NCBI RefSeq assembly: GCF_964204645.1
Contig: NC_134030.1
Span: forward strand, 9,637,222 to 9,701,221
From: Tubulanus polymorphus
Lineage: Eukaryota; Animalia; Nemertea
Length of the DNA stretch: 64,000 bases
Reading direction: 5' to 3'
Positions 21,658 to 60,661 of the stretch are shown here, one piece after another. A program made the translations under genes and the position numbers. The notes below the pieces were generated by a model. It saw only the letters and a program-made list of their open reading frames with translations, was not told the origin of the DNA and ran no database searches. Every line of letters starts with the position of its first letter. The stretch's first letter is position 1.

Positions 21658-22863
21658 TTAGATGTTCGTATTATCATAACACGTACTTTTCCTTGCAGAA
21701 TTGACTCGAACCTTCGTTATCTGTTTGCTAGATGACGATTCACCACTGTCGCGTAACTGACTCGCGGAAGGCGTCGTCGTTGCGAAACGATCGACCCCTG
21801 GAGATATCACGTTACTCGCCGAAAAATACATCGTCGGATTTCTCGGGACGAGCGTTTGACTCGTCTGCGCCGACGTCAACGCGACTACACCATTCGACAG
21901 CTGAGGTGACGTTTCGTTCCTCATTAAACATTTGAAGGCGTCTCGAAATGCTTGGTGATAATTCTTGTTACAGAAAACGTATATGATCGGGTTGATGAAA
22001 GAGTTCGAGTAAATGATCAACATAACGCTATGCCTTGCAGCGAGGTCAAGGTTTTTACCTTCGCTTTTGGTCATGGCCTTCCAATACAACGCCAAAAACG
22101 GCGTCCAGCATATTATCGAAGCGAACACTAACGCGCACGTAGTTATAAGAGTCCTTTTCAGATAAGCGTTCGATTCTCTATGACTCGGTATATTCATACC
22201 CGTATTTCCTGCTATTACTCGATTCTGTTTGTACAATATGCGTATCATGTCCGCGTTAAGGGTCAAAAGACCCAGAATCGGCACGGTTAGCGCTAACGTA
22301 TTAGTCACGTGATTTGCCACGTTGCTTACCGCTATGTAGTGACAACATTTCGGGGCCGGGTCTGCTGATGTCATACGCCCCATCACGTACACCGTCGGAA
22401 TGAGCCAACCAATAACGATTGTCATGGTCGTTATTCTATCGGCGTGTTTTCTGTAGAAAGTCGAACCTCTGACTGCTATGTATCTGTTAACGGTAATGCA
22501 TAGCACGTTACAACACGAGGCCATTAACGAGAAAGTTACTAACGTGTGCATCGCCAAGCACAATCTGATACTCGCGTTTCCCGGTTCTGATGTAAATAGC
22601 TGGACGAGCGGAAATATGACGATACCGACGATCGTGTCCGCAAGGGAGAGACTCACCAGAAGGCGATCGAAGCGCGTTCGTAGGTTCTTATACGCTATAG
22701 CAAACGCCAAGACTAACATGTTGCCCGTCAACACGAAAAAGGCCATGAAAAACATGGTGAGCAAAACGATGTGTTTCATTCCCGACCCGGGCGGTAAGAT
22801 GTATCTGGAACAATTCACTCGGCTGCCATTTCTTACCTCGTCAACGTACATCAGACTTCCCAT
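21658..22863 (-). CDS. Class A (rhodopsin-like) G protein-coupled receptor, orphan/aminergic-adenosine-like, 401 aa
   Basis: Single-exon ORF with seven hydrophobic segments. Motifs: GN in TM1, LSLAD in TM2, TM3 Cys with an NRY motif, W in TM4, CWTP in TM6, NSFINPIIY in TM7, helix 8 YHQAF. N-terminal N-glycosylation sequons (NGS, NCS). A likely 5'UTR acceptor (TTGCAG) lies at ~22913. Confidence 0.95.
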   Translation of the reverse strand: MGSLMYVDEVRNGSRVNCSRYILPPGSGMKHIVLLTMFFMAFFVLTGNMLVLAFAIAYKNLRTRFDRLLVSLSLADTIVGIVIFPLVQLFTSEPGNASIRLCLAMHTLVTFSLMASCCNVLCITVNRYIAVRGSTFYRKHADRITTMTIVIGWLIPTVYVMGRMTSADPAPKCCHYIAVSNVANHVTNTLALTVPILGLLTLNADMIRILYKQNRVIAGNTGMNIPSHRESNAYLKRTLITTCALVFASIICWTPFLALYWKAMTKSEGKNLDLAARHSVMLIIYSNSFINPIIYVFCNKNYHQAFRDAFKCLMRNETSPQLSNGVVALTSAQTSQTLVPRNPTMYFSASNVISPGVDRFATTTPSASQLRDSGESSSSKQITKVRVNSARKSTCYDNTNI

Positions 22864-39905: not shown

Positions 39906-41053
39906 CCAATCATTTTGATTCGGGTCCTAGTGCGCACAGCGCTTTTCATCATTAAAGCTATAGTGTATGGTTTTAATATTTCGTTTCAAAACGGAACAAT
40001 TCTAGAGCAACTGAAGGGTATCTACATGTACATATAGCATTCATCGCATTTCATACAAAACACAGAATACGTACACGGATCGAATTCAAATTGCGCTGCG
40101 AAATATACAATGGATCGGATTCATTGTAACAAAAGAAACACCCAACTGATCTCGCGCGAAGCGACTACATGTACGAAAACCCCGATGAAACAAACACCAA
40201 AATCTAATCCAAAATTTATTTTTACTGTCCTAGAAATATGGAATATTCAAGTCGTGCCTATTTCGGATCAAACGATTAATCAAAGGAACCGATAAACCAG
40301 TATATAATAGTTTTAAAAACACCAATTATCTTTATGATATTATTGTTATCATTATCATATACATAAACAACTATTTCGGAATAGTAGCAGTTTCTAGTAA
40401 CACCTAGCGTAAGTCGGATTTTTTTGGACCAAGAAAAATCCTGTGACTTAGGACAAGTCACATTTTTAGCCTATTTCCGAAAACTACGACTTGAGAATTA
40501 ATTTCTGTTAACGGAAAAATTATATCAATATCTACAAGAAATGATTTAAAAACGATGAAACATTTTGGGTTTATTTTTCTATTCTAATACGCTAACCGCA
40601 ACTGAAATAACGACTGGTTGACATGTATCGTCGATTTCGAGCCAGAAACAACAGGATAATATGGTATCTCTGTCGAACAAAGTTTCTTAATTTCTAGAGG
40701 AATTTCTTTACTTTTGCGCATGTCTATAGGGGTCCGAACAAGGAAGCAATCAATCAGCAATGGGAAGAAAAAAGTCATCTGACTTATGACGGGAGATTTA
40801 GTGATATTTTATTCAGGTATTAGAAGTACTTCGACTAACATTATCCGCCTTTGGAATATAAATGTCTTTGGAAACGAGAAGGAAAAATCGGGACGATCTT
40901 TAAACATTGATTAGGATATAAGCGATTATCCGACTTTCGCCGATCTGACTTACGCAAGGTCTACTGTAGTCAGCTAGCAAAGATTGGGGGCCGGGAACCC
41001 CCTAACTCTGTCCTGACTCCGAGTAAACGTTAGTAAGTTTATTCATTGTTATT

Positions 41054-44000
41054 TTAGGGATTTACTCTTCGGAGATCTTCCGCCGAAATATTTGACCTCT
41101 TTATCATTTTCTCTTTATCTTCGTCGCTGATAGGATTCACGTCGAAAGGCGAGTCCTTCCATTTTTTGATCAGGCGGCAACGTTTTCCCGATTCCGAATT
41201 CTCCAGGACGAAAACGCTTATCTTGAAGAATGGGTAGACTCGTTCGCGATAGATGTTCAAAGTGCCCCAGTGTGAATTACATTTGACGCATGCAATTTTT
41301 CCTCGTTCGTCAATCTCATCGTAGCGCTGCGCTTCTCCCTTTCTATGACGGTAACGGGCATCGATTTCATCCGTCAATATGGTGAAACCGGAGCAGACCT
41401 TGCGAAAATCACTCGAGTCGCAAACGTACATGTCACAATAGCTACAGTAAACGCGATAGAGGCCCGTGTCCTTTTTTGACTTCTTTTCAATGCTTAATTT
41501 TCTCAGCCGTAACTCCTCTATCTGTAGATTTCTCAAATCCAATTTAAAACGTGCATTATCCTCTCGATATTTCCTCGTTATTTCTTGAATTGCTTTACGC
41601 ATTATCTGTTCCCTCATTTCATTGACTTCTTCTTTACGAGTCACCTTTTCTGCCAAAGCGATCACGACATATCGGCTGCCTTCTTTCCTCGCACGGCCTG
41701 AAAATATTTTTTTCATATTTTCAATGTTATTTTTCTTGATTATCTAAGTTAAAGTACAAAAGTTTATTACGTGAACATAACGACCTACCTCTAGTCTGAA
41801 CCATGGCGATCTCGTTTGTAACGTGATTATAGCGAATCACCAAACTACACTGTTTGACGTCTAAACCCTCTTCAGCGACAGTCGTGGCAACGAGAACTTT
41901 GTGATCACCGTCGCTGAAGTACTTCAACACATCTTCCTGTTTGGATTTAGTCATTTCTGAAAAGTAAATAATACGAGTAAATTTCCAACACTTTGCAACT
42001 ACCGACAACTTACGCCCGCCGTTCTCACCCTGTCCGACCAGAAACTTAGCATTCAACTGCTTTAGCTGTTCGTCTTCATTCATCCAGTCCTCCAGAATTC
42101 TGGCTAACTCTCTCGTCTTAACGAATACGATCACGCGACATTCCGACTGATATTTGTGATAGCTCCACGTCAGCAAATCTTTGAGTTTTGTCATCAACGG
42201 ATTTGTATAGCGTTCGTCATCGACTCTCGTCGACAATGCTTCATATACACCTAAAAACAGACCCATCGACATGATAACTTTATCAAACGTTGGTTTTCAT
42301 TTTTCATGTTAGGCTGACTTACGTCCATAGGATTGCTGCAAGAACTTATCCAATTTACACGGTCTACCTTGAACATTTATCGTCGGTATAGTTGCGGCAA
42401 GAAAACCCAGTGCATCTCTCGACCGGGATTCAAGATTCAACAACAATGATTGGTGATAGTACTGGAAGCGTAAAATAGTGTTCCTTTATGTACGTTATAT
42501 CTTAATAGGTCTGCTTCTAATTCAGCCAGAATTTGATAACGTGAATAATAACTGTAATACATTACCAATACCTTAAGGTACTTGATGCACGCGTTCAATT
42601 GTTTCCGAACCTTTTGCTCATAGATTGTGGGAAAAATTTTCTCCATTTCGCTAACCCATTGCGTGTACTGGCATTCTTCTTTGCCTGCGGGGCAACTGTG
42701 AAGCCGCTTGCAAAATCCCGGTATCTCTCGATCCATGTCATCGTCGATACCTTCACGAATGAAATGATAATGCTAAATGAATCTGCGGACAATTTTTGCG
42801 CAATTCTAAAGAACTATGATATGATCTTTTCGACCGTAAGTAGATTCATTGCATAATTATGCAAGGATGAAATTACAGAAAGTGAATCAAATTGTATGTG
42901 TCGACAATGATACGCTGACTGGGATATCACATTCGAGATCAAGCAGTTGGAAATGGACCGTTTATACGATTACCTTTGATTTTTTTCATCTTTCCTTCAA
43001 TCGCAGTCATGACTTCCAATACGCATCGTTGAAAAATATCTTCCGCTCGCGGCTCGATCCTTCTCAGCTCTATAAAATAGTCATACCTTTCGTCTAAACA
43101 CCAAAAGTCATTATTATATCGAAGCAGTTTCATTTTTTTTTAAATCAGCTATATCAACGACCCCTTTTCCATATAATAGTTGACTCCTCCTGAGCGCCTG
43201 GTAATTGCTCGAATGTTACTTTTCCCCAGGGAGAGATGACTGATACATGGATAGAGATATAGGCTGGGGGTAATATAATACCAAGTTTGGAGCGCATTTG
43301 AACATACTCTAGTTTCGATACCTGCGCTATATAAATGACAATTATTATCAATTATGATAGTTGGTTCTAATGCTCCCGTTGATACGTAACCCTTATGTTC
43401 GTACTGTGCTCGTCCATAGTAAGTCGATCTTGATGACACTTGGGTACGATGTTAGTGTATGTCTAGCTGTGCAGTGCAAAAATGGGCACAGCTGCATGAT
43501 CTTGAAGATGACCTCGTAACAGAGGAACGGGGTTGAAATTCAAAAAGTTGTCAAGGCAAATCACCATTGATAAAACACTTAGTGTTTTATCAATGGTGAT
43601 TTGCCTTGACAACTTTTTGTAGTGACTACATCCGTGTTGTGACGATTCTCCATTCCTGAAGATGACTACTAGAATATAGTCGAAACGTCGAATAAACTCC
43701 TAGCTCTAGGAAACATTTTCGGACTGTATCGTTATCATTGTGGGATTCTCTGTAATGCCTAGGAAAAATCATTGTGGGATTCTCTTTATACTGTACTAAA
43801 GCATGGGAATTTCGGAGTAACAGATTTGAGCCTAAGCCCGAGAACCTTTTGTCACCTGTGGCTCGTCTCTATGCAACCCCACCCCTTGAAAATTAGAATA
43901 ACCATCGATCCCGCCCTTTCTGAGCAAAGATTAACCTGATTTGATTTTGTTGAGGTCGCTGGTATTGTTCGGATCCAACGGTGGACACACCATGAGTGAA

Positions 44001-47000
44001 TCGAGATTTGCACACATCCTCATGATGTGCTCGACTGCTTTCTCCAATGTATTCGATTTGTTGGCACCGGGAGAAGCGGTGAGTCCAATTATCTAAATCA
44101 TAAATCATACATCAAGCGCCAGAATTCAAGTTTCAGGAGGCAGAGAGTGAGAGAGAGACAATGAATAAATACCTGCGGCAGATATTTGGATTTCTTCTCC
44201 AGTTTTTCTGTCATATACAGACACATAATTTCATTGTAAGGGTGGCCCTTGTCCGTGTGGTGACACTCGTCGAATACGAACATAGAAAACATATCGATAG
44301 ATACCCTCGTTTCGTTTTCGCTTTCCATCATTGCGTTCAGAAGAACTTGTGCGGTCATGACGAGAATACGGTAATTTTGCACGAGTAAATGAAACGGCCC
44401 GTGGTCTCTGGTCTCACCGCTAATACCGAGGCTTTTGAATTCACCTAAGTATTCCTCAAAACGTTTGTGCTGTTGCAAAATCAGCGAAACGCTCGGCACA
44501 AAGAATATAAGTTTGTTTTGTTCATTTCTTTCCAAATGTTTCTGAAAGTAACAATTACGCGTAGTTTTTAACATTCTTTCCATGCGCAATATCACCTGTA
44601 TGCTTGACCAGCTCCTTATCAGTTTACGTAATTAAACGTGGAAGTACAGCATTAAGTGGTTTGTGTCCTCAGTGTGAACTTATTCATATTTTAACGCGTC
44701 TCTTCTTATACATCTTTCTATTCTTCTCATATACTCATTTGACAGGGTGTATAACGAGTTCGAAACTCGGGAAGGACAGATATATCTTCCTGTTACATAC
44801 ATTCTATAAACAGGGCCGGCAAAAGAAAGTTGGCGGCGCTAGCGTTAACCCTGCAAAAATAGGTGCCTATTTTGTTTAAGGGCTTCATGTACTGGAGAAA
44901 TATTCGTAAATGGTTGCATTTCTAAGGCTTATGGGCTATTTCAGACAATACTTTTCTGGTATAATGATTCAGGTTACTTTGTTTAAGACGCTGCGGCTGT
45001 TTTAGAGTCGATCACAAATACGTTGACACAAAAAATTCATCATCGGCAAAATTATTGGCCTGGCCAAAGCCCCCGCTGCGCCACCCCTGATAGACTAAAT
45101 CAAAAACTTTCAGGAAAAAAATTAGATTCATATAAAAACAGCGAAATTCGTTGTAACGTTTACCTTGCAAATGTCCAAAGCCACGAACGTTTTACCGTAG
45201 TTAGTTGGAGCTACGATGATCGTATTTTCCCCGCTGTTCCCCTTTTCGGCTAGAGCCATCTGATGCGAACGCAACTGCAATTTCTTTTGCGTGGGCTTAC
45301 TTTCGTTCCCTGTAAAACGTTGATGAAATGAATGAAAAAATTACAATCAGAAAGATGTTTGTTGTGCTAACGTGAATTCTATTAATAGGTCGCGTAACAC
45401 GATTCACCTTCGTTAAATTGACCGCCAACGGCGTTTGAGAAACTCGGGATTGCCTCGTCATCGTCATCATCGCTGCCATAATCGGTGCTAGAATCATCTG
45501 GAATGAACGACGTCAACGGTTTCTTAAACTACAAATGCAATCGAAGCTATTAAAAAAACAATAGGCTAAACAATTATAGCTTGTTTCTCCAAATCGGCCG
45601 GATCTTTTTGTGAAAATGCAACGAAATTTGTAATCCCCTCAGTTTACCTATATAGCTTGCGCGGGTCTGTTATGGAAAAATTGAATGATGAACTTAAAGT
45701 AATGTACAGGGTAGAAAGGTGGCCGCTCGGGTCAACATTTAAGCAGAAAAGGGAAAAAAGGTATCAATCTTTTTAACCTAATTCCAGAACAAAATATGCG
45801 ACATCTTACCATCACCCGCGTCATCGTCAGACAGTTGGAGTTGAGAGAGATTCAACGTTAGTGAACCACTGCCGAGACCATTAGGCTGAGGTTGGGTAAC
45901 GCCGCGTTCACGTTCATTTTCATTATTAACCTGGGGATCATCACTTCTGCGCTCGCATGTTTCGTCTAAACGTTCGCCTTGGACCCTTTCGATGTCTTTG
46001 TTACCGGATTTAGCTATACACGTGCAAACAATGAAAGAAACTGATTTTGGTATCGGACAGAACAACCGACCATTCACAGATTTCCCATCTTCACTCGCCA
46101 GGGTTTGATTGCCGAAGTTCACACCAACACAAACCCTGTCCGCAAACCCTTCATTGGTCTATTGCATTTCCCGATATTTCTTCGGCGGACGGGTTGCCAC
46201 TGAGCGGCTACCAGTCTATACCCTAGCCAATCTGAAGCGTAGAGAATCTACCGGTGAAAAAAGAACGCATCTGATTGTTTTAATACATGGACTGGTGGCC
46301 GCTGAAAATTTTGGGCAATGATTTAGACCAATGAAGTGTTTGTGAGGGGCCAGTGAAGGGCCAGTGTGTGAGCTTCAGAGGGTGGCAATCAAACCCTGGC
46401 AAGCGAGAACGCAAATTTGATTTGAACACTTTATTTTTCAAATATAATTTACAGCATAGTGTACAAAGCATGATACAAAATACAGTAAATTAGACCTGGA
46501 GGGGCCTGTAGAAACTAAGGAATAGTTTGTATAAAACAGGTCCCTCAAAAGAGAAAAGAAAAAAAAGAGAAATGCAATAAAGAAAATAATATGCTCACAG
46601 TCAACCCTTAACACACAAAATGCAATCAAAGTAAACTATGATAACAGCTTGATTAAGATATAATCATTTAATAAGCCAGTTATTTTCTGAAATATTCCAA
46701 AAACAATAATTTTAGTTCGAATAACTGTATGATAAAATCAAGCACAAAGTTGCTTTCTATAATTTCTTAGGAACAGTTTAGAATTTTCCATGTTTTTTAG
46801 ATTTTCACTGATGTTATTCCAAAGTAAAGGGCCGGATACTTTTACTGAAAATTTTCTTCTTAGACTATTGAAAGAAAGTGTTTGTAAATCTTGACGTCGC
46901 CGAGTATTGTGACTGTGGATTTGAAAATTTTGGTTCCAATAATTTTCGAATGATTTCGGTAATTCGGAGTGGACAGATCTGTAGATAAAAGTACCTAGCC

Positions 47001-50000
47001 GAAGTTTATTAATATCTTTGAGCTAGAGGATATTAAGAGCTTTGAATATAGGGTCAGTGTGCGCCAAATAATAGGAATTAGAAATTAGCCTGATAGCTCT
47101 TTTTTGCAATACAATTAATGGCTGAAGTTTATTTTCAAAATTTCGTCCCCAAACTAAGTTACAATACTGGAGGTAAGGATCAATAAGCGACAAATAAAGG
47201 GTACGAAGAGAACTCACTGGCAGCTTATGTCTTACTCTATTTATTATACCAATGCTTCGAGAAACTTTTTTTTAACTGATTTTATTTGATCGTCCCAGGT
47301 TAAATTTCTGTCAATAAAAACTCCAAGAAAATTTGTGACATTGACTTGTTTGATCTCTATATTGTTAATTGATATTCTCAAGTTATGTTTCAATAGTTTA
47401 CCGAACACCATAAATGACGTCTTCTTTACATTCAATGACAGCTTGTTTGTTTGAAACCAGGTATACAATTTTGATAATTCAATGTTTACTGTACGTACTA
47501 ATCTGTCTAAATTAATGTCACTATAAAAGGCATTTGTGTCATCGGCAAACAATATAAGTTTTAACACATTAGAAAATTTAATACAGTCGTTTACATATAA
47601 TAAAACAAGCAAGGGACCTAAAATTGAGCCTTGGGGTACTCCAGTTTTAACGGTACATAACGAGGATTTATAATTTTGAATTTGAACAAATTGTTTTCTA
47701 TTCTTCAAATAGTTTTCAAACCAGTTGTTAGAGATGCCTCTTATTCCATAAAAACATAATTTTCTTAATAAGATTTCGTGATCAACGGTGTCAAAGGCTT
47801 TTGATAAATCTAAGAATACCCCAATAGTTGATTTGTTTTCTTCTAAATTTTGTGAAATTTCATCAGTTATCAATGTTAAGGCCATGGCAGTTGAATGGTT
47901 CTTTCGAAAGCCGAACTGGTTTGGTTGAATGATATGAAACTTGTTACAATATTCGGTTAATCGATTATACACTATCTTTTCGAGAATTTTAGAAAAGCAA
48001 GGCAGTACGGATATCGGTCTGTAATTATCAAAAGAGTCATTATTGCCAGCTTTATAGAGTGGACGTATTCGCGCTACCTTCAGTTCAGCCGGCACTATAC
48101 CGGAATTTAAGCTACAGTTAAATATATGAGTTAGCGGGTATTTTACAGAATCAATTATTTTCTTAACTACTTTTACAGAGAAACCATCAGCACCAGCGCC
48201 TTTGCTGGGTGAGAAATCATTTACAATCTGACTGATTTCATCAGGGTGGGTCGGGAAAAAGAAAAAGTTTTCATTTACTGGATCTGTCAGATATTTACTG
48301 AAGTGGACACCTGTATCTGGTATTTGATTGGCTAGGTTGCTACCAATATTTACAAAGAAAGAATTAAATTCATTAGCGATATTTTCATAGCCGTTTACAA
48401 CGATACCGTTCCTTTTGAAAGAGCAAGGTAATCTACACCGATCATTGGAAGATTTTCCAATTAGACTGTTTAAGATATTCCATGATTTTTTCATGTCGGA
48501 TTTGGCTGCAAGTAATTTAGTCTCATAATACTTTTTCTCAGCATATTTGAGTGTACGAGACAAGGTACGTTTGTAATTCAAATAATTTTTCAAATGTGAT
48601 CTATTACGCAAAGATTTTCTGTACAAGCGATTTTTGTGTTTAATACATTTCAATAATCCAGATGATAACCACGGTTTATGTAATTTATTTTCGTTTATTT
48701 TACGGGGAGTTGAAAAAGGAAAACATTCATTATATAATTCCATGAATTTAGTGTTAAATGCGCTGTATGAGAGTTGCGGGTCTGCGTTACTATAGATATC
48801 CGACCAATCAGTGGCCAGAAGAGCTCTATTGAATTTTGAAATGTTACGTTCACAATAGTTTCTGTTCGAAGTCACCTCTTGGTCAATTTTGGGCTCAACG
48901 TGATTTTAGACAGTAAAAATAGGAAAATGATCCGAAATATCCCTGCTCTTTTCGATGACTACACGCCTTTTGAATTAATACGTGAAGCATTCGTGATTTA
49001 TACATAATTTGCATTATCAAGAGCGCGAAACCAACTGTACGCACTACAATACTTACCTGCCATAGTTTGTTGGACATTTAAACGATTGTAAGCTCCATCG
49101 GGTGCTCGGCACTTTCTTTGCGTTTCTTCATTACTACTCACCGAATGATTAGCGGCGAGTTCTACAGAGAAAGATCCAATTAGAGCGCAGTAGAAACAAT
49201 TGTGAATAGCTTTGTTAAAATACGTTTTTCTAAGTAGGCCTAAATACAATTATATTTTGAAAACAGGCCGGGACATGTTGAAATGGAGATAATGTGCAAG
49301 CCAAAATTCAATAGACACTGAAATTGCTTCTTGGGAATTGCTTCTTAGGGATTCGAACCCGATGGTATCGCCACGGCATGAACCCCTGTCACACTAGACC
49401 GAGTACACAGGCTCATGCGCAGGTTGGCTGCATGAAAACTTATGCACCAATCAGATTGCTTGTTGTATAAGCACGGAAAGAACTATAAATGGGAAAACCC
49501 GGGCTGAAATGGGACAAGCTGTGCATGCAGGGTTTCGTACCGTGGCAAATTTCGATGCCACCGGGTTCGAATCCCTGCCGGGGGAGGAGAGGATGGGGTA
49601 AGTATAAAGGAGCCAGATGATTCAGTGCAAAGGTTAACAGTGCAACCTTATACTGGATTCTAGCAGAAACGGGTAGCCAGTGAAAGTCCCGATGTGATCA
49701 AATTTCTGAGTCCTCGATATCAAAGCTGAATTTTGGAGAATTTGAACTCGTTAAGTCTGCAGATAATCCTATCAATAAGCTGTTGCGATAGTCAATGCGA
49801 GATAGGTGCCTGGACAAGAGATTCATTTGCTTCAGTACTCCAGCATTTGACTGTCAGTGGTCATTGTTGCTTTTAATACGGAATGAAGAATGCAGTGTAA
49901 CGTAACACACGGACTAGTGACACAGTGACTTAGATTTTCTTTTGAGATATTTAAACCGTTTACCTTGGTCGTTGTTCATGTTATTCGTGTTTCGGTCATT

Positions 50001-51753
50001 TTTATTTTGAGCACCAGTAACGACATTGGAAGCACTGGGAACCGACGTCGCATCTCTCTCGCCAGATTCGGAAACTAGGTAAAAGTAGTATATATCATTT
50101 GCATTATCTGAATAATGTAATGGTATATTTTCAATGGCTTGTCGCTTGTCATCTACGACGATAATTGGAAACAAACAAAACAGTTATACTGTCAAAAAAC
50201 GTGGGTACTTACAACAAACAAAGTCTTCACGAATGCTCCCCAACTCGCTATCGTCTAAACTCGTGCCTGCTTAAAAAAGTGATGTACATGTAATATTGTA
50301 TATCGCCAAACAGCGAATTAAATGATTGAAACCGGTTTTCATTGAGTTTTGGTGAAAATTATCTAAAAATAAAACTAGTCCTGAAGTATTATAAATACCA
50401 CGTTGTAATACGGAAGCTGCTTCTGCTTGTTCTTTATGCCACTGTTGCAATGTGTCGGAATTCGCAATGTCTAGATCAGTATTACCATCTTCAAAAACCA
50501 ATGATTACAATCGAATGAAGGTAAACTCGCACCCGCCGAATATATATCTAGTAGACATGAAAAGACGTTTTTAAATACCTTTTCGCATGAATCCCGCTAA
50601 TTTGTCGTACAGCGAATTGCAGCCATGCTTTTCGAGGATTCTCAGAAACGAAACCGGCCAATCTGACTTCGTTCGCGCTACAAACGCCAACAGAACATCC
50701 ATGGCTGAAATTCATATATGATTCCATTGAATAGTTATATCTAAATATCAATTTCAAAGTTCGTGACGATACGTTCATCAAAATAACTCACGGATACCTG
50801 AAGTGTTTCCATCGTTCTCCAAAGTTCTTTTAACTTTCTCGTATTGGGTTCTGTTTAGACACTCGTTCTTTAAGTCCAACAAAAGGCCACAATTTGCATC
50901 CAATTGAATTGTATCGCAAGCTTCATCGAAATTCAAACGAAGCAAACCTTGGAAACAGTCGTAACAATACACATCTTCATTCAATAACAATTTCCGAATG
51001 GTTTCATACTCTGAAATATGACCACTTGTAAATAAAACCACTAGAAGTTCATCATCTATGATCTCATACGTAAAAGTGTACGAGTAATAAATGGTCAGAA
51101 ATTCGAATTTTTGCCATGCCGTGTCAACCTGTTTCCTTTAACGCATCGATTAGGGCGGCAAAAGAGCCCTTATCCCAACAATCCAACAGTCCATCCACAA
51201 ATGATTCAGCGGCATCTTCATTTCGGCCCGCTCGTTCATGTGACTGGATCTTACGTACCCATTCTGTTAGAGGAATAAATGCATTGAAATACCAAAATGA
51301 TACTGATGGACCTAATTTTGCAGGACAGAACTCATTTTCAACATATGCGGTTCCATACTCCCAAATCAGCAGTCTAACATTTCTCCTCCCTATCAAGCAT
51401 ACCATACCCAAAGCGGGGAACAATGTATGCGTTCTTTTTCAAGCTTTCAAGTACATAGCCTACCTTTGCTTAAATGATGCGGCATGTAGCAAGTAAGGTG
51501 ACTAGGTAAATGGATATCCCGAAACCGATCTCTGAACAATTCTATCATCAATTTCTGCTCTAAAATTAGATTCTATAAGCGTATTTATATTATCAATGAT
51601 TGATATCATATCAGATGGTTCAGTTAGACGAGGTCATTGTCCGTTGATGCCTAATGTATTATACGTTTTACATGGTTTATACGAACCCCTTTCGAGTCGA
51701 GTGTTGTCTATGTTCGGAACGCTGTTATTTTCGAGACCCGCAGCGCTATTCAT
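41054..51753 (-). CDS. RIG-I-like receptor A (RIG-I/MDA5 family: 2xCARD, DExD/H helicase, Zn-binding CTD), ~1142 aa
   Basis: Twenty phase-consistent exons: 51753-51687, 51559-51464, 51263-51129, 51010-50798, 50704-50579, 50488-50399, 50269-50213, 50074-49964, 49161-49057, 46013-45810, 45497-45408, 45309-45164, 44541-44173, 44092-43936, 43069-42974, 42750-42572, 42461-42323, 42250-42014, 41956-41789, 41697-41054. Motifs [45 protein letters not shown]; CTD CSYC..CVKC..WG. CARD-like AAESFVDGLLDCWDKGSFAALIDALKETG. The first exon and linker exons are less certain. Confidence 0.92.
43541..43619. repeat. Perfect 39-bp inverted repeat with 1-nt spacer in an RLR-A intron
   Basis: CAAAAAGTTGTCAAGGCAAATCACCATTGATAAAACACT-T-AGTGTTTTATCAATGGTGATTTGCCTTGACAACTTTTTG. 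Confidence 0.97.
43652..43693 (+). ncRNA. Minimal type I hammerhead ribozyme motif (second copy of the repeat family, ~43625-43790)
   Basis: Helix I ATTC/GAAT; CTGAAGA(T); stem II GACTA/TAGTC; GAAAC-GTC (cleavage triplet GUC). AATAAA follows. Confidence 0.72.
46092..46409. mobile_element. Foldback MITE family A, copy 2 (RLR-A intron, abutting the LINE 3' end)
   Basis: CTCGCCAGGGTTTGATTGCC ... GGCAATCAAACCCTGGCAAGCGAG; homologous to 16230-16567. Confidence 0.85.
46410..48945 (-). mobile_element. 5'-truncated, defective LINE (CR1/L2/Crack-Daphne group) with reverse transcriptase, in RLR-A intron 9
   Basis: The end of the APE domain (DISDHFPIF, ~48942) is followed by an in-frame TAA. ORF 47244-48875 contains NYRPISVLP, QFGFR, FLDLSKAFD, GVPQGSILGP, FADD. 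There is a frameshift in the A-run near 47270, a premature TAG at 47023-47025, and a further reading frame to ~46740. The 3'UTR ends in AATAAA (46430-46435) plus TTCAAATCAAAT. Confidence 0.95.
49348..49576. mobile_element. Foldback repeat with B-box-like GGTTCGAATCCC ends (related pieces ~25225-25430, ~33190-33245)
   Basis: GGGATTCGAACCCGATGGTATCGCCACGGCATGAACCCCTG and CAGGGTTTCGTACCGTGGC..CGATGCCACCGGGTTCGAATCCC are inverted copies. Confidence 0.55.
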
Positions 51754-51844
51754 CTTCGTGTCCAGTCCTGATCCGCCACTCAAGGAGAGTATACTTTTTT
51801 AAAAGATATTCACTACAATGAATATAGCAAAGATGCGACTCCTA

Positions 51845-51855
51845 GAAAGTGAAAC
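51845..51855. promoter_or_regulatory. ISRE/IRF-binding element candidate GAAAGTGAAAC in the shared RLR-A/RLR-B upstream region
   Basis: Matches the IRF-E/ISRE core GAAANNGAAA(C); the minus strand reads GTTTCACTTTC. It lies ~92 bp upstream of the predicted RLR-A ATG. Function not shown. Confidence 0.55.
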
Positions 51856-53209
51856 AAGGCGCGGTCCAAGAACTTTGTGGCCCAAAACTGCTAAGATGAT
51901 TGTTTATAAGCCGACTTACGAATAGTTTCCAATGAAAACCAGGAACACGAATGCGCACCTGGTGAAATGCTTGACAATCTGGCAATTTCAATATTCAACA
52001 CCCTCTGGTGATTGTGGGTTTCAAAAATGCCTAGGCACCAGTATCACGGAAATACTACCATGTCATTCTTCAACACCCCCTGGTAAAACTCCCCACAATC
52101 ATAGAACATGTCACGAGCTACGAATTTGAAATTCTATTCATGTACCGTATATATTTGAAGTTCCTCTAAAATTGATAAACTCACTGCTGTTTTGGTTTAA
52201 CGTCGTAGCCTATTGGTTGCGCTTATTTAAGATCACCGAGCTGCGTGAGGATATTGCGGCACCGATTGGGGCTCAGGACTACGACTTTCAGCTAATCATA
52301 ACCCCAACGCCTTAATGCGCCTCCTTAGAATTCCAAGTTCTAATTTGTCGGCCTCCGCCACCACCATGTGAACCCAGCTAAATTTATGGATCCGCCCCTG
52401 ACTACAAGTCCTCAGTACATGAACAATCAATTAATATTCACTTATATTATAGGCTTACAAGTGGAATTATTTGATTGCAATTTTACACTAAATGGTTCTA
52501 GTTCTTATAGGCCTATATGCCATTGATAGGCCTCGTTAATATGATTAGGAATGCCTGATGACCCAGCCATGTAACTGCTTACCTTGTCTCGTGTGTACGG
52601 TACTGCGTCTCGCGTTATGCTGAGAGGCGTCGCAATACACAGTATAAGGTTATGCGCGGTTTACAGTACTTGGTAATCGGTTTTCCCCAGTCGTATTTTA
52701 ACGACACGAGTTCCCAGCAATCGATTGTACGCATTGAAAAATTGTGTAGATACAGGCCTATATCAGTAGGAAATGATAGCGCTACCTAACAGGACATTTT
52801 GATGATCTCATTTATTGTGTTAACATCCATCGGTTTGGCGAGTATTCCACATCTGCAAGTAGAAACCTACATATCACGCTGACTCTAAGAGGTAGGCCTT
52901 ATTTTTTAACAATTCCAGGTAATGATAGGGCACCTTGTCAAACGAACCTTGATTTCTAAATTTAAATGATAACGCATATAACGTAGGCTAGATTTGGTTG
53001 GCTTAATCAGAATATAAGCTGGGTAAAAGCAATAACTAAAAGACCCAATTTAGTCCTAATACAAAGGCCTTTTGTTAAGGTGAGAAAAAGCGAATTTCTA
53101 CCAACATCGGTCTGGTGTCTCTTGTCATTTTCTATTGTCAAAGCGATTGAATTATGTGGAAATGTTAAATTCATTTTTTTAAGTTTGTATTGGTGGTATT
53201 ACCTACAGT

Positions 53210-56200
53210 ATGACTTGCGCCGGTGAAACGAGAACCCAGCTGGGAAAAGATGGCGAAGAAAGCTGTTGTACGTATATTCGAATATTCTCCCCAAATAATC
53301 GACTCCGTTGTTGCATTGGGAGGTGCTGGCATACATTGATTTTTCTGCCCCTGATAGTGAGTCATGGGAAAAACCCATTACCATGTCATCGTAGAACCTT
53401 CATATATAGGCCTACTACAGTGGCGTGTAGCTAACTCGCTCGTGTGTGGAGATAGATATGTAACCCATAAATTACGACTCGTCTCTTTGTAAAGATTACA
53501 TCACGTACCTATATCGCAAAGAACAAATTGATTTTTTGTACTCAGTTATCCTACTGGACCCATGGTCTTTATTTGCTGATATTTGGTATTTCTCATAGTA
53601 TTTCGGATAAAAACCAAGCACCTGGGCGCTTGGTCTTTTCGCATTGCACCTTATTTTCTGTTGCGAGGTTTTTTTGAAGAAAATATAAATCAACAGGTTC
53701 TAACTTAAAAGTCTCGATATTTAATTATTGTTCATATCACGCTTGCTAGGGTTTGGTTGGCAACCCCAACACAAACTCTGGCCGCAAACCCTTCATTGGT
53801 CTATTACATCACCTTAAATTTATTGGGTGGACAGGTTGCCGCTAAGTGGCCAAGTCTATCAGATGCGTTGTACCGATAGAGCGAATCAACCAGTAAAAAA
53901 CAACGCATCTGATTGGTTTAATACATGACTGGTGGTCGTTTAGCCGCAAAGCAGCCACCTGTCTGCCCAAGAAATCCTAGACAATGTAAAAGACCAATGA
54001 AGGGTTTGCGGCCATGGTTTATGTTGACGTGAGCTCGGCGGACGACAACCAAACACTGGCAACCGTACATGATTATTGCTAGGCTTACACTGTCATAGTC
54101 TCCTTACATGAAATTGCGAATCCCCAGTTTTTGTTCTCGCCATCGGAAAATGGATATAGAATATTTAATTGACTAACCACAATCAATTGCGCAAATGTAA
54201 CTAATGACGTGTTCCGAACCGTTCGATGATTGTGGTGAGTTTCACGGTTTTGATTACTGCAATTTTGAATATTGAAATTATGCATTTTCCCTGGACCACT
54301 AAATGTACTTCAAAGGTTACTGCTAAATTGTCACGAATGTTATCGCTAATTTCTATACAAAATCTGAAATATGTTTGAACGTACTATGATATATAGATTT
54401 TCTTATCGCTAAATCATTCAGGGCAAAAATATCTGATAGACCATGTGTACAGAGATCGATTTCAAGATATACCTATCCCTAGCTTCGTTACCCACTTCAT
54501 GCCGCATCATATAACCGAAGGTACGTACGCCTACGTCGGATTGTCGTCCGTTGAAAAAATGTGTGTTTAAAACTATTTGTGGGGTGATAAATACCAAAAC
54601 TTTTGGTATCCTTTTGGCAAAATAGCTGTCTGCCCAAAGAATTTTTTTCAGCATTCTGTTGTTTAGATTATAAATTGATTGTAGAATGGATATTGAAGAT
54701 ATTTAAATCTGAAGAGGCAGGCAATCACGAGGCTGCTGCGAAGCTATTTGTGGATGGAGTGCTAGAATGCTGGAAGGAAGGGTCGTTTGTTGCCCTTATC
54801 GGCGCGTTGGAACAAGCAGGTATAATTTCGGCTATTGAATGATCCGAACATCTTGATAAGCTCTGAATGTAGGCGGATTTACATTTCTTGTTTCAGAAAA
54901 CGAAGTACTTTGTCAATTGCTCAAGAATGATGACGTTTTCAATTATGATTGTTTCCGAATATTGGTCAGCTTGAACATGAAGCAAATCTGCGAAACCGTG
55001 CAGCTAGACGTTAATGCTGGTTTGATGTTAGATCTGAAGCAGCTGTGTCTAACTGAAAGCCAATACGAGAGAGTTAGAAAGGTGTGCGAGAAACAGGGAA
55101 ACACTGCAGGTATGACAGTCTGGTCCTTAATAGCGGGCACCATCCTCGGCCCATTACGATTGTCATTTGCCACACATGTACATTCGATATAATTGAATTT
55201 CAGCGGTGAACGTACTCGTGACAGATTTGTTTATATCTAGAACAAAACCGAATTCGCCAATGAAATTTCTTGACATACTCAAAAAGAATGGCTGCGACTT
55301 GATGTATGACGAATTGACAAAGTTCATCGGAAAAGGTAGCTTATAATTTAGCTGTAGTTGACGGTATTCATGATATTCCCACTCCGCGAGAAATGGGAAA
55401 CGACGAGCTTCGTTTGAAGCAAAACAAATAAGACATGTAGTTGATTGATGAAACTCTAGTGAGTATAGATTTTTTGGTACTGAAACATTTTTAACGAAAA
55501 GTTTGGCCAAAAATCGCCAGATATAGTATGAACATATGATATCCACAACTTAAGTATTGTACGTATTTACATAAATACGGTCGGTCCCTGGAGGGAAATC
55601 CTTTTTGAAATCGCAAGGGAATGCTTGTCTTCGATGTCGGAAGGAGCGGAGGCAAAGCGTTACTGACAATCGATAAGTATCACGAGGCTCCACGTGATCT
55701 CGGAAAACATTTGATCAGTTCTCTACAATAATAGAATTACATATGCATTTTTTTACAGACGATACCGATCACTCGGCCAAGTTGGACAAGTGGGAAATGT
55801 TGCAAACAGAAAAATCTCGGAACGCCGAACCTGAATCAGATCAACATATAGACACCAGTGAGTTTTCTCGTTTGAATTTAAAGTTATGATTTATATATAA
55901 TTCGTTTTTGAATCAATACTAATTCAAGAATAACAATGTTATCAAATATCTATATATCAGGTTGCGGTGAAACATTATCTGTGGACGTGGCTGGTGAGAA
56001 TTCAGAAGAAACGCAACGCAAGTCCCTCTATGATTCTCCGTATGAGGCGGAGGCAACTCATATCGATACGCCACAAAATGCTAACAACGTAGCGACGCCT
56101 GGTCAGCATAAATATCCAATCGTTTATCAGTGATCTTAACTTGCCAAATATTTTTCCAAAGGCTCATGAATTTATATTTTCTGGCAGGGATTAGGGGACG

Positions 56201-59200
56201 GTCTCGGGGGTTCGGACCATTCAGGTTGCTATTTTCATCAATTTAAAGATCGTTAGAAGCTTCAAATTTGATGCTCATCCTTTCGGAGATGGCATATTTT
56301 CGGGGTTTTTTCTTGAGTATCTATCTACCACTGTAGTAGTAGCATATGACATGGCTGCTTTATTCGAAACATGCCTCTCCTGTTCTTCTGAACCCGGCCT
56401 TCCAATTTTCCTTATATAGATCCATCCTTAAATATTGTATTTTACTCGTTGCTTATCGGTTTATATTCCACTATCTTATACTCATTGACCTGATAAAATT
56501 GCTATGGTTAGTTAATATCAACATATCGAATAAAACATAGAGCTAGGTAGGAGTCGTCGATATTGTTAAAATGAAAAACATAATATGAATGAAATACATT
56601 TTACAGACGAAGAAGAAGATCCAGTGCAGATTAAACAACTAGAATTGCGTGCTCAACAAACACGCCTCGCTGAGTACGGTAACAGTGGCAAAAATGTTAT
56701 CATCGTTGCTCCAACTAACTTCGGTAAAACGTATGTTGCTTTGGATATGTGTAAGGTAAAAAGTTGTTTTTCGTAATAAGACGCATTTACACGGCTGTAC
56801 GTGTTAAGGTCTCTGTAATATTTCATTCGAATACCTCGTTTTTATTTTAAGAAACATCTGAAACGAAATGAACAAAACAAGCTGATATTCTTTGTGCCTA
56901 GAGTTCCCTTGATTTCGCAACAGCACAAACGTTTTCGTGAATACCTAAGTGAATTCAAAAGCATTGGAATGTGTGGTGAGGCGGGAGATCACGGGCCGTT
57001 TCATTTACTTCTGCCAAAATACAGAATTCTCGTGATGACTCCCCAAATTCTACTCAATGCAATGAAGGACGAAAATAGAATGGAAACAAAGGTGTCGATC
57101 GATATGTTTTCTATGCTCGTATTCGACGAGTGTCACCACACAGACAAGGGCCATGCTTACAATGAAATTATGTCGTTGTATATGCACGAGAAATTGATCA
57201 AGCAAGCGAATTATTTACCTCAGGTAAAATTTACATAATCGAATGGCAGATGTTTTAGCCTTTTTTTTTCAAAAGTGAAGGCCTTGAAAATCATTTTGGT
57301 AATAAACTTTGTTTATTTGACTAGATAATCGGACTCACTGCTTCTCCCGGTACCAACAAATCGAATACAATGGAGAAAGCAGTCGAGCACATTATGAGGA
57401 TGTGTGCGAACCTCGATTCGATCATGGTCTGTCCAAATTCGAATGCGGAGAACTTGCAAAACGATGAAATAAAAACAGGTACGTCATAATTCTACATATA
57501 ACGCTGGTCGAAAAGGTGTTAGGTTGGATAGCAAATAGTTAATGAGTTTAAACTGTAGTGCTATCACATGGCGAAGTGTAACTGGATTTCGGGTTGAAGA
57601 TCCGAACACAAATATAGTGTCGTCGTGTATTATCCAATATCGTGTATTGCCTCACCACCCAAGAACATATTAAACATGTACCTGGCCTGATCAATGCCTC
57701 CTGAGTGCCGAGTACTGTAGCCAATGATGTAGCATCTCCTCGTGGAGAGACAAGGATATATCAAACAAGGGAGGGGTAATGATACCCGTATGAATGTCAC
57801 TGGTCACAGGCGCTTCGGGTATATCGGTACTTGCGCTTAATTTTGTATACACGTATTATCAATTTATCTTTGAAAATGCGGTGAAATCTTCAGAACTAAG
57901 AACAGTCACTCCCCGTAAGCATGATATTTTTCAACAACGCATAACTGATGTCATGATCCGGATCGAGTCGAAAATTAACACCTTCGCCGGTAATGCACAT
58001 TTTAATAAATCTTTTTAAACAATTCGACCGTTAGTTATTCCGTGTGCTCCTAACAGCATTCGTGTCGATTATTTGCTCAGGTGTCAATAACGAAACGGCA
58101 TCAAAGATTCCCGAATACATCAATTTGCTTCGGAGTTGTCCTGCCGCAAAGAACGACTGCCAATACACGGGATGGATCAGTCAAATGAAGAAAATCATTC
58201 CCAAGCTCCAAAATCCACTTTTGAACGATTGCGTCCAGTATTTGATGGTATGAATTTAGTATTTGCGTGGCTGCACTACTTTCTATTATTTGAATTGCAT
58301 TTTCGAGTACATGTTTTAAGTAGATTTCAGTAGCGGTGTTTGTTCCTTGTAGCATTATCATGATTCGTTGTTACTGAATGATAAATGCCGTTCAAGAGAC
58401 GCGCTAAACGACCTCGAGAAACATTTACCTTTAAAGCTGTTGGACATGCCGATGGAAACCCATCGGTTTCTGGAGCAGTCCTATAAAGGTAAGTTTTAAT
58501 ATTAAATTCGTACGTAGATGAAAAATGGTTGATCGAACAACGAATAATGGGATCTTACGTGCGCGTTATTATGTGCTATTTAGGATTACACGAAGAATTA
58601 CACTCTAAAGTCGATGAGGAATGTTACACGAACCCATTGATGAAACTTCTTAAAGATTTGTTGACGAAGAGCTATTCCCAATATCAGTCGGAATGTCGCG
58701 CAATCGTATTCGTCAAGACGAGAGAGTTAGCCAGAATTCTGGAGGAATGGATGAATGAAGACGGACAACTAAAACAGCTGAACGCCGCGTTTATGGTTGG
58801 ACAGGGTAGGTACAACTATTGGAGTGATAAATTAGTTAACAAGTAGTTTGCATAACAGGGAGGGAAGCCAGAGTTCAGGGCAGTGGCTGAAGTTAGTAAA
58901 CAACCTACGTAGATGCTTACGTCGCACATAAGACACTGAATAGAAGATAGGTGAAAGTATCGGATTAATCGGAACCCACAACGACAACACGAGGGGAGAA
59001 CGCAACGTGGCCCCCACAACACAACGACCAGGATAGTGCCAAACTATGCACAAGCCGCTGGAAACTTACTCGCTTATATACCTTTTCAGAAATGACCAAG
59101 ACAAAACAGGAAGAGGTATTGAATAATTTCAGCAACGGTGATCACAAAGTTCTTATAGCCACGACTGTCGCTGAAGAGGGTTTAGACGTCAAACAGTGCA

Positions 59201-60026
59201 GTTTGGTGATTTGCTACAATCACGTTACAAACGAGATCGCCATGGTTCAAACTAGAGGTAGAACTATAGGAACTATATATATCTTTTCCATATTCCGAGA
59301 CATGAGATAATCGTAAATATTATCATAATATTTACGATTATCTCAAACATCATAATGATGACCTATGATCTATATATTTAAGGCCGCGCAAGGAAAGAAG
59401 GAAGCAAGTACATAGTCATTGCCGTGGAAGATAAGATCACGGCCAAAGGGGAACTCAATGAACTGAGGGAACAGATAATGCATGTAGCGATTAAATTCAT
59501 CACGAGAAAGTACGAACGAAATGAGGAGCAATTCAAAACTGATTTAGAACGCTTGCAGACGAGGGAATTAAAGCAGAAGCAGCTTAGCCTCGAGAAAAAG
59601 CCGAAAAAGCAAGAAGATCCGTTCAAAGTTACATGCATCAATTGCTTCACGGATGTCTGTGAATCGGTTGATTTTCGGAAGATTGCTTCTGGTTTCACGA
59701 TAATATCCGATCACATCAATAAGCGTTACAAACGCAGAGCTGCAAAATCAAAGACGTATTGCAACATCGAAGAGCGGGGAAAGATCGAGTGTGCCGCCTG
59801 CGGACTATTGTGGGGATCTTTGAACATCTATTGCGAACGGGTGTATCCCTTCTTCAAGATAGAAAATTTCGCCCTCACGAATTTGCGAACTGGCGAGACC
59901 TCCCCCCGCATAAAGAAATGGAAAGACTCCCCGTTCGCTGTGGAACCCGTCGGCGATGAAGATATAGACAACATGATAAATAAGTCTACTATTTCGCCCG
60001 AAGAACTCCGTCGACTAAATCCCTGA
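53210..60026 (+). CDS. RIG-I-like receptor B (2xCARD, DExD/H helicase, Zn-binding CTD), ~994 aa; paralog of RLR-A
   Basis: Fifteen phase-consistent exons: 53210-53267 (tentative), 54422-54520, 54685-54819, 54897-55109, 55204-55335, 55759-55857, 55961-56101, 56607-56755, 56852-57223, 57325-57478, 57894-57989, 58081-58247, 58353-58488, 58584-58805, 59090-59257, 59383-60026 (counting the tentative first exon gives 16 segments; 2985 nt). Motifs [55 protein letters not shown]. Several exon lengths are identical to RLR-A (135, 213, 96, 168, 644). Confidence 0.92.
53737..54067. mobile_element. Foldback MITE family A, copy 3 (RLR-B first coding intron)
   Basis: CGCTTGCTAGGGTTTGGTTG..GCCGCAAACCCTTCATTGGTCT / AGACCAATGAAGGGTTTGCGGCC..CAACCAAACACTGGCAA. 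Confidence 0.8.
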
Positions 60027-60661
60027 GCGTCGACGTCTGGATGTTTAACAGTTGTGCCGTTAGTCCCTAATTCCTCGATAACTTGCGCTGACCGAATGAA
60101 TGAACAAATTATCATAATCATCATTAGCAATTCAGTGCCTTTCAATTCGATCCAATTTTAGGTACCAGGTACCAGTATAGCAACGCATGAAAATTATAGC
60201 GATCTGTGTGTATCAAATATGTTTTCCAATTGGAACAAGGTTTTTATGAATTATGTCACCGCGTCCGGTTCAGTGATCGGAGAGGCTATCGTTAGGTGTG
60301 GTACAGGTTTGTTCGAAATAGAAAAGACCCGTCTGACTTGAATACTTCGGTACTGGAAAAAAAGTATCTTAGCTTGGCGGCTTAGGATGACATACTAATG
60401 TCGCCTAGAGGATGTTATTATCATTCATCAGGCAAACATATTTTTCAGTACGTGTAACCCGGTTTGCTTCTCTTTTGATTTGCAGCGTTTCGAGTCCTAA
60501 CTTTATTTTGAAAAAATACCTCGTGTGCAATAATCACAATAATCACAATAATCGTGGACAATTATTTTGAATTTAAACGCTTCAATAAAAACATGTATCC
60601 GAATTCATCGTTTAGTACATTTATTTCAATTGACATAGAATTGCATGTGGACCGACCGAAT

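Follow-up and report, generated by a model that had tools for sequence, protein, structure and literature searches.

The locus analysed here raises the question of how two RIG-I-like receptor (RLR) genes, lying divergently in the nemertean Tubulanus polymorphus, are related to each other and in what manner their products may act. The window, which denotes the whole 64,000-nucleotide stretch of DNA analysed, contained two intact 2xCARD–helicase–CTD genes in divergent orientation (A and B, Table 1). A preliminary description had proposed such a pair, and both of its predicted start codons (51753 on the minus strand and 53210 on the plus strand) were correct. With a probability of roughly 60%, A and B are functional RLR paralogs, which arose as old inverted tandem duplicates, make up the complete detectable repertoire of the animal, and are coupled and act in parallel with divided ligands.

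Table 1. Positions of the features of genes A and B in the window.
Feature	Position	Strand	Remark
Gene A coding range	stop 41054, ATG 51753	minus	RefSeq 'DHX58-like isoform X2', P0151, 1136 aa
Gene A coding exons, 5' part	51753-51687, 51559-51464, 51263-51129, 51010-50798, 50704-50579, 50488-50399	minus	common to both models
Gene A coding exons after linker	45309-45164, 44541-44173, 44092-43936, 43069-42974, 42750-42572	minus	common to both models
Gene A final coding exons	42461-42323, 42250-42029, 41956-41789, 41697-41054	minus	common to both models
Gene A linker region	45406-50264	minus	located by identical P0151 peptides
Gene A isoform X2 linker exons	~50264-50214, 50072-49965, 49162-49058, 46014-45811, 45498-45406	minus	splice ends approximate
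Gene A tandem CARDs	50579-51559	minus	coding exons 2-5; CARD_2, 2 stretches, E 9.5e-22
Gene A last exon	41054-41697	minus	pincer and zinc-binding C-terminal RNA-recognition domain
Gene B coding range	ATG 53210, stop 60026	plus	RefSeq 'DHX58-like', P0001, 994 aa
Gene B coding exons 1-8	53210-53267, 54422-54520, 54685-54819, 54897-55109, 55204-55335, 55759-55857, 55961-56101, 56607-56755	plus	
Gene B coding exons 9-16	56852-57223, 57325-57478, 57894-57989, 58081-58247, 58353-58488, 58584-58805, 59090-59257, 59383-60026	plus	
Gene B tandem CARDs	54422-55335	plus	coding exons 2-5; CARD_2, 2 stretches, E 1.2e-16
Gene B last exon	59383-60026	plus	pincer and zinc-binding C-terminal RNA-recognition domain
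Shared segment with non-coding exon 1 of A and of B	52583-52891	both	RNA contig
Gene A intron 1	51813-52582	minus	770 nt, in 5' UTR
Gene A exon 2	51687-51812	minus	start codon 51753
Gene B intron 1	52892-53183	plus	292 nt, in 5' UTR
Gene B exon 2	53184-53267	plus	start codon 53210
Rel/NF-kB-like nonamer GGGAAAACC	52679-52687	minus	mid-segment of shared exon 1; lead only
ISRE-like decamer	51845-51854		in gene A intron 1
Dispersed repeat, ~73 nt	51940-52012		in gene A intron 1

The exon model of gene B encoded 994 residues, and its translation was identical to the public protein P0001. The short model of gene A encoded 996 residues and was the same as P0151 outside the linker. At the 5' ends of the genes, 13 introns were confirmed by spliced RNA contigs, every one of them GT..AG. 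The junctions of gene A were supported by RNA down to 50488 and were set by homology and GT..AG ends downstream of this position, and those of gene B were supported by RNA up to 55961. The reading frames were open and the splice sites were all GT..AG in both genes. All 15 coding introns agreed in position and phase between the two 16-exon models, as had been claimed; the agreement did not extend to the linker, which in the RefSeq form of gene A is acidic and of low complexity and has four exons more than in gene B. Linker exons of gene A inside a retrotransposon, which were favoured by the splice-path search, were replaced by the mapping of the RefSeq protein. The large intron of gene A contains a retrotransposon. 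No Rfam family was matched across 41000-60100. A haplotype mis-assembly was ruled out, given that the nucleotide identity of the exons was just 68-84% and that an RNA contig with 0 mismatches ran through the junction in the order of the assembly.

The domain content was evaluated in single exons and in whole proteins. Two CARD_2 domains, DEAD/ResIII, RIG-I_C (Hel2i), Helicase_C, and RIG-I_C-RD were matched by Pfam in A and B, and all matches exceeded the curated cut-offs. The E values for Hel2i (PF18119) were 2.3e-13 in B and 2.3e-11 in A, and those for the CTD (PF11648) were 5e-21 in A and 3.5e-21 in B. Against PDB sequences, the CTD exon matched MDA5 with E values down to 2e-17 and RIG-I with E values from 1e-13 to 9e-15. 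The four zinc cysteines were retained in A and B and were invariant across the eight RLRs compared. Hence, the features that define an RLR by sequence, namely, the tandem CARDs, the DExD/H core, Hel2i, and the four-cysteine CTD, were present in both proteins. Both genes are existing RefSeq entries named "DHX58-like", which is an automatic name. LGP2 is an RLR without CARDs, and the LGP2/DHX58 identity carried by the name was rejected because A and B each carry two CARDs.

Motifs II (DECH), III (TAS), and VI (QTRGRAR, pattern QxxGRxR) were intact in A and B. Motif I in both was APTN[Y/F]GKT, in which the lysine of GKT was retained and N replaced the usual G, and the aromatic residue preceding the glutamine of the Q motif was substituted in A and B alike. 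Given the unusual Walker A and Q motif, the ATPase behaviour may differ from that of the vertebrate RLRs. The RNA-end-binding loop of RIG-I, whose residue roles are those seen in RIG-I structures, aligned with a CTD loop in which gene B retained two lysines, with Glu and Gln in their place in gene A.

The divergence between the two copies followed the pattern that had been described, with a conserved helicase core and diverged CARDs, linker, and CTD. The amino-acid identity between A and B was 78% in Hel1 and 81% in Hel2, whereas it was 51% in CARD1, 50% in CARD2, 42% in Hel2i, 54% in the pincer, 54% in the CTD, and 24% in the linker. The alignment, the translation, and the dN/dS calculation were performed on the joined spliced models. 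The overall dS was ~1.3, and the comparison of dN/dS per domain, which had been suggested as a check, gave values of 0.16-0.31 in all structured domains, indicating that both copies are under purifying selection. Because Hel2i, the CTD, and the CARDs have diverged, including the charge changes in the CTD loop, A and B may differ in RNA specificity and in adaptor surfaces.

It is highly improbable that one copy is decaying or has moved from antiviral sensing to another role, for example, that of a small-RNA or RNA-metabolism helicase. The non-canonical motif I and Q motif would be in line with such a change; however, these substitutions are common to both copies, and the N variant of Walker A was also found in several bivalve RLRs. 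The long acidic low-complexity linker of gene A, with its isoforms and the retrotransposon in the large intron, also points in this direction, but the open frames, the GT..AG splice sites, the dN/dS values, and the expression and correct splicing of both genes argue against it.

The introns and exon 1 of A and B showed no alignable similarity, except for 32 nt in intron 14, which were branch-site and 3' splice-site sequence. A recent gene conversion spanning introns was rejected since the introns were unalignable. Among conserved four-fold sites, 38% differed in Hel1 and Hel2 vs 63% elsewhere (Fisher p = 0.0013). This synonymous likeness of the ATPase core points either to RNA-level constraint or to gene conversion involving the two inverted copies.

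The origin of the pair was explored by phylogeny and by searching the 268-Mb genome in full. The RIG-I CTD, the Hel1 exon of A and B, and the CARD exons were found at this locus only, and A and B are the whole RLR repertoire detected in the T. polymorphus genome. No CARD-less member of the LGP2 type was detected in this search. No MAVS-like partner was found in the genome with the CARD_2 and CARD-exon queries, which are weak and easily miss exon-split, fast-evolving CARDs. A and B were 66% identical to each other and at most 35% identical to anything else found. In the trees, they formed a sister pair (100% support) on a long stem branch, and they fell outside a clade with 99% support that held deuterostome RLRs, including vertebrate RIG-I and MDA5. 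They were placed beside the molluscan RLRs, and the nearest sequence found was ~35% identical in a comparison set without the RLRs of other nemerteans. Orthology to vertebrate RIG-I or MDA5 was rejected because A and B lay outside both clades. The inverted duplication that had been postulated was supported by this mutual closest relationship, and in the phylogeny, which had been proposed as a check, the pair lay outside the vertebrate RIG-I/MDA5 clade. An old, lineage-specific inverted duplication is supported by these results, together with a shared bidirectional promoter, for which the evidence is as follows.

The distance from ATG to ATG was 1456 bp, in agreement with the shared upstream region of ~1.45 kb described earlier; this interval is not promoter throughout, and it comprises, for each gene, the 5' untranslated part of exon 2 and intron 1 (770 nt in A and 292 nt in B), as well as the 309-bp segment that contains both exons 1. 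The left edge of the segment is a minus-strand splice donor belonging to gene A, and the right edge is a plus-strand donor belonging to gene B. A single RNA-derived contig (1746 nt, 0 mismatches) linked gene A with gene B; its joints were 51812/52583 (CT..AC) and 52889/53182 (GT..AG), and the exact GT..AG ends were then refined. Slight background read coverage could let such a contig bridge two first exons that do not overlap. The mRNAs of A and B were both present and correctly spliced in one RNA run (X2), and no sequence of the locus was found in the RNA run X5; the expression basis is one RNA data set in the form of assembled contigs. Both genes are expressed, as judged by the mismatch-free contig and the outward-facing donors that bound the shared segment, and the spliced contigs matched both copies with 0 mismatches. 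The first exons of A and B probably overlap or abut within 52583-52891. The start sites therefore overlap or are separated by no more than about 0.3 kb, and the genes form a head-to-head pair on opposite strands, with a distance of <1 kb between the start sites. The location of both first exons inside one segment agrees with the claim of a shared promoter region and supports 52583-52891 as the core of a bidirectional promoter. A and B are probably switched on together because their transcription starts inside this one 309-base segment.

It is also conceivable, though rather unlikely, that the arrangement is incidental, with each gene driven mainly by its own intronic or flanking elements and with expression that is not meaningfully coupled. 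The two sides of the promoter showed no detectable sequence symmetry or common motif block, exon 1 and intron 1 of the two genes were unalignable, and the motif matches were close to the chance level. The Rel/NF-kB-like nonamer had 9 matches in 64 kb vs 5.4 expected, which corresponds to ~0.03 expected matches per 309 bp, uncorrected for the several motifs considered. A CpG-island reading of the promoter was rejected since the observed/expected ratio of CpG was already 1.23 window-wide. The single expression sample also leaves room for uncoupled genes. On the other side, a single 309-bp segment contains both first exons, the mRNAs of both genes occurred in the same sample, and co-expression is common among head-to-head pairs whose start sites are separated by <1 kb.

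The favoured mechanism, in which A and B are coupled parallel sensors, would begin with an old lineage-specific inverted tandem duplication that gave rise to both genes, whose expression would be coupled by the shared promoter. Each protein would work as a standard RLR, in which the CTD and Hel2i would recognise RNA, the ATPase core would clamp and proofread it, and the tandem CARDs, once released, would signal to a CARD adaptor. Like RIG-I and MDA5 in vertebrates, A and B may have come to serve different ligands and perhaps different signalling contacts. Parallel action of the two is more likely than an obligate complex.

Head-to-head plant NLR pairs, such as RRS1/RPS4 and RGA5/RGA4, are asymmetric and combine a sensor bearing an integrated decoy with a helper. 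A and B resemble these pairs as divergently oriented paralogs that encode innate immune receptors and share a short promoter. An obligate unit of the same kind, in which the two would form a heteromeric sensor or one would act as regulator or helper of the other in the way that LGP2 aids MDA5, is improbable. The head-to-head genes with their shared promoter and co-expression, the status of A and B as the sole RLRs detected in the genome, and CARDs that are ~50% identical yet under purifying selection are compatible with it. However, the domain sets of A and B are identical, unlike those of the NLR pairs, with the catalytic motifs, the zinc sites, and the CARDs intact in both; no domain was integrated or lost, and the sole structural difference is the longer acidic linker of gene A. 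The sensor/executor asymmetry of the preliminary description was not borne out, as the two proteins share one architecture and keep the motifs and zinc cysteines, and the mark of the plant NLR type was also missing, as no additional or degenerate domain occurs in either protein. The heteromeric system that it considered is supported by nothing found. A more elaborate scheme is similarly doubtful: first exons overlapping in antisense would give the two mRNAs complementary 5' leaders able to pair and, together with a foldback in an intron of gene B that may be A-to-I edited at 53973-53991, the locus would make its own dsRNA, which would tune or license the sensors, or else A and B would form an obligate hetero-oligomer through their diverged CARDs.

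The pair was compared with known systems. A and B share the order 2xCARD–Hel1–Hel2i–Hel2–pincer–zinc CTD with vertebrate RIG-I (DDX58) and MDA5 (IFIH1), which are likewise a pair of paralogs whose ATPase core is conserved and whose modules for recognition and signalling have diverged. In contrast to the vertebrate genes, which are unlinked, A and B arose by an independent duplication, are sisters outside the RIG-I/MDA5 clade, and lie head to head with their first exons in one 309-bp segment; moreover, no CARD-less LGP2-type member accompanies them, and their Walker A has N for the usual G. Classical bidirectional paralog pairs include COL4A1/COL4A2 and histone H2A/H2B. A and B are similar to these and to other head-to-head genes in that the start sites, on opposite strands, are separated by <1 kb and the products belong to one pathway, whereas their first exons may overlap in antisense.

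The pair would represent a compact natural two-sensor system for antiviral RNA recognition, with an origin independent of RIG-I and MDA5. All RLR genes detected in the animal lie within 19 kb, grouped about a single promoter. No new kind of molecule or mechanism is revealed by it. The pair may serve as a model of duplicated innate sensors that divide ligands and signalling surfaces and keep a common motor, and of whether gene conversion between inverted copies maintains this motor. It may also be useful as a model of a bidirectional promoter that coordinates immune receptors in a spiralian that, to our knowledge, lacks interferon.

Expansions of lophotrochozoan RLRs have been attributed to local tandem duplication (PMC8998645). 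A and B are similarly a lineage-specific local duplication in a spiralian, but in contrast to the arrays of 6-19 genes reported there, the locus holds two genes only, with canonical 2xCARD architecture and no grafted N-terminal domains (PMC8998645). The terms "head-to-head" and "bidirectional" are absent from the text of that study, and orientation and shared promoters are not discussed in it (PMC8998645). The RLR gene of Sinanodonta spanned 57 kb, no neighbouring gene lay within 10 kb of it, and the best short CTD-only matches in other species were located on contigs of 1-1.5 kb.

When ORFs were listed and individual exons were scanned with Pfam, the RLR exons fell into two sets, one on each strand, and both sets matched CARD_2 (weakly), DEAD/ResIII, Helicase_C and RIG-I_C-RD (E values of 5e-21 and 3.5e-21 for the last). 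The whole proteins of gene A and gene B each contained two CARD_2 stretches, DEAD/ResIII, RIG-I_C (Hel2i), Helicase_C and RIG-I_C-RD, all above the cut-off. Both genes were already annotated in RefSeq, gene B as "ATP-dependent RNA helicase DHX58-like" (P0001, 994 aa) and gene A as "DHX58-like isoform X2" (P0151, 1136 aa). This name is misleading because LGP2 is without CARDs and both proteins have two CARD_2 stretches. P0001 was the exact translation of the gene B exon model, which had been built before P0001 was seen, and P0151 was identical to the 996-aa gene A model outside the CARD–helicase linker, where it had four exons more than gene B. The junctions were RNA-supported and homology-guided GT..AG; downstream, beyond 50300 (gene A) and 56200 (gene B), they were based on homology and the RefSeq proteins.

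In the short model, both genes had 16 coding exons, the positions and phases of 15/15 coding introns were identical, and the exon lengths were equal or differed by a multiple of three. The exons had 68–84% nucleotide identity and were open and alignable over their full length in the translated comparison; otherwise, the nucleotide comparison gave only one repeat common to two introns. No alignment of the introns was possible except for the final 32 nt of intron 14 (z 7.1 versus shuffles), a likely branch site plus polypyrimidine tract. The divergent pair reported in the preliminary description was thus confirmed and sharpened by Pfam, gene models and transcripts; its predicted ATGs coincided exactly with the start codons within exon 2 of the spliced RNA models, and its matching introns were borne out. 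The large linker intron of gene A also contained a 543-aa RVT_1 ORF (E 7e-36), a non-LTR retrotransposon fragment on the gene A strand.

Coordinates of the features of the RLR locus and its surroundings
Feature	Position	Strand
Divergent RLR pair	41054-60026	
Gene A, ATG to stop	51753 to 41054	minus
Gene B, ATG to stop	53210 to 60026	plus
Shared first-exon segment	52583-52891	
Gene A linker exons in P0151	~50264-50214, 50072-49965, 49162-49058, 46014-45811, 45498-45406	minus
Hel1/Hel2 exons, gene A	42029-45309	minus
Hel1/Hel2 exons, gene B	56607-59257	plus
Motif I (Walker A), gene A	45188-45211	minus
Motif I (Walker A), gene B	56703-56726	plus
Conserved 32 nt of intron 14, gene A	41957-41988	minus
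Conserved 32 nt of intron 14, gene B	59058-59089	plus
RVT_1 ORF	47244-48875	minus
Rel/NF-kB-like nonamer	52679-52687	
TATAAG	52643	plus
~73-nt repeat	51940-52012	
Second, partial copy of the repeat	52060-52084	
Gene B intron with foldback element	53268-54421	plus
Foldback element (~330 nt)	53739-54066	
A>G sites in foldback element	53973, 53984, 53988, 53990, 53991	
Rhodopsin-family GPCR	21658-22863	minus
Fringe-like glycosyltransferase exon	35705-36469	plus

The transcripts were examined in the assembled contigs of the sequencing runs. X2 was an RNA run with spliced contigs, whereas the other two runs of that sample, X3 and X4, were DNA-like and unspliced; run X5 had no sequence of the A/B locus among its contigs. 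In X2, a single contig (1746 nt, 0 mismatches) spanned both genes, with exon 5 of gene A at one end and exon 8 of gene B at the other. All of its gaps to the left of the shared segment were CT..AC, i.e., GT..AG on the minus strand, and all of those to the right were GT..AG. The contig covered the segment between these gap ends; hence, all 309 bases were transcribed. The left border was a minus-strand donor and the right border a plus-strand donor, and such outward-facing donors place the non-coding exon 1 of each gene inside the segment. The 5' UTR introns were 770 nt (gene A) and 292 nt (gene B), and the ATG of both genes was in exon 2. An unstranded assembler joins two transcripts only through common sequence or gap-filling background reads; the first exons of the two genes therefore overlap or abut. 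Under either arrangement, these unstranded contigs put the start sites at most ~0.3 kb apart, and the genes form a head-to-head pair by the usual definition. Both copies were expressed, as seen in the spliced contig, and their start sites are near each other, which answers two of the objections foreseen in the preliminary description. The proposed inverted duplication with shared regulation was supported structurally.

No inverted symmetry or common block was found when both sides of the promoter were compared, and the CpG ratio was uninformative in the Tubulanus polymorphus genome. Candidate elements, to be taken as leads only, were a Rel/NF-kB-like nonamer midway along the shared segment (~0.03 expected there by chance), a TATAAG, and an ISRE-like decamer whose distance upstream of exon 2 of gene A is 33 nt. 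A dispersed ~73-nt repeat was located in the gene A 5' UTR intron; the genome has at least 428 candidate copies of it, and its depth in X2, X3 and X4 was very high.

The divergence between the two proteins was uneven across domains.

Amino acid identity and dN/dS between genes A and B
Region	Identity	dN/dS
CARD1	51%	0.26
CARD2	50%	0.16
Linker	24%	
Hel1	78%	0.16
Hel2i	42%	0.31
Hel2	81%	0.19
Pincer	54%	
CTD	54%	0.23

The likeness of the helicase exons and the divergence of the CARDs, linker and CTD, noted at the outset, were thereby quantified (Hel1 and Hel2 versus 24–54% elsewhere). Overall dS was ~1.3; the duplication is old, and both copies are under purifying selection throughout. Synonymous divergence was lower in the Hel1/Hel2 exons than in the CARDs, Hel2i, pincer and CTD: 38% versus 63% of four-fold sites differed at residues conserved between A and B (Fisher p = 0.0013), and 27% versus 49% of all synonymous codons differed (p = 8e-7). 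Therefore, the likeness of the helicase exons exceeds protein-level constraint alone. In this comparison of two sequences with no outgroup, one reading is that the ATPase cores of the inverted copies underwent gene conversion long ago, and the other is synonymous constraint on that core. Because Hel2i separates Hel1 from Hel2, the divergence forms a mosaic, as two old tracts of gene conversion within the inverted pair could have produced. This mosaic divergence of the pair is new.

DECH, TAS and QTRGRAR were present in both proteins, and motif I was APTN[Y/F]GKT with GKT kept. Its N also occurred in several bivalve RLRs (Mercenaria, Mactra, Ruditapes, Dreissena and Mya). Two features were unique to the pair among the 81 sequences compared: the aromatic residue that follows this N, and H or Q in place of the aromatic residue that precedes the Q-motif glutamine. 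The four zinc cysteines of the CTD were invariant. In the CTD loop aligned with the RNA-end-binding loop of RIG-I, both proteins kept the RIG-I-type aromatic residue and lysine, whereas two more lysines were kept in gene B and were Glu and Gln in gene A. The roles of these residues are known from RIG-I structures. This difference is the one concrete sign that ligand preference may differ, and different specificity of the two proteins is a reasonable reading of the sequences. The suggested sensor/executor or heteromeric system found no support beyond the orientation because the proteins were symmetric in every feature tested.

Searches of the 268-Mb assembly for the RIG-I CTD family, the Hel1 exon and the CARD exons gave matches at the A/B locus only, apart from one distant helicase exon elsewhere. 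The entire RLR repertoire detected in the genome is a single divergent pair whose first exons lie together in 309 bp, and this arrangement is new. An exhaustive profile search with the CTD exon returned gene B (55% identity), and no further match exceeded 35%; word searches with P0001 returned molluscan RLRs at ~35% and MDA5s at ~30–32% over the C-terminal half. In trees rooted with Dicer helicases (FastTree, 81 sequences; IQ-TREE with PMSF, 45 sequences), A and B were sisters with full support on a long stem (0.84 versus 0.22–0.28 for the tips). They fell outside the 99%-supported clade of vertebrate RIG-I, MDA5 and other deuterostome RLRs, and adjoined molluscan RLRs, a placement that was weakly resolved. 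The pair thus arose by a separate duplication in its own lineage and is not a counterpart of RIG-I/MDA5 by descent. Gene orientation and shared promoters were not discussed in PMC8998645, on lophotrochozoan tandem RLR duplications, and no account of RLR genes in head-to-head orientation came up in the literature search. No other immune genes were evident in the flanks, where a rhodopsin-family GPCR (a single 401-aa ORF) and a Fringe-like gene, neither immune-related, were located.

The gene B intron that follows exon 2 contained a foldback element predicted to form one long hairpin (MFE -156 kcal/mol, z -11.4). Clustered A>G changes occurred in X2 RNA at five sites, of which 5/5 are A and 4/5 pair with U in the stem, and none was seen at these sites in the DNA-like X3 and X4. 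The element is multi-copy, and the changes may have come from a paralogous copy of it; nevertheless, they resemble A-to-I hyper-editing, here of a double-stranded element within an intron of a dsRNA-sensor gene.
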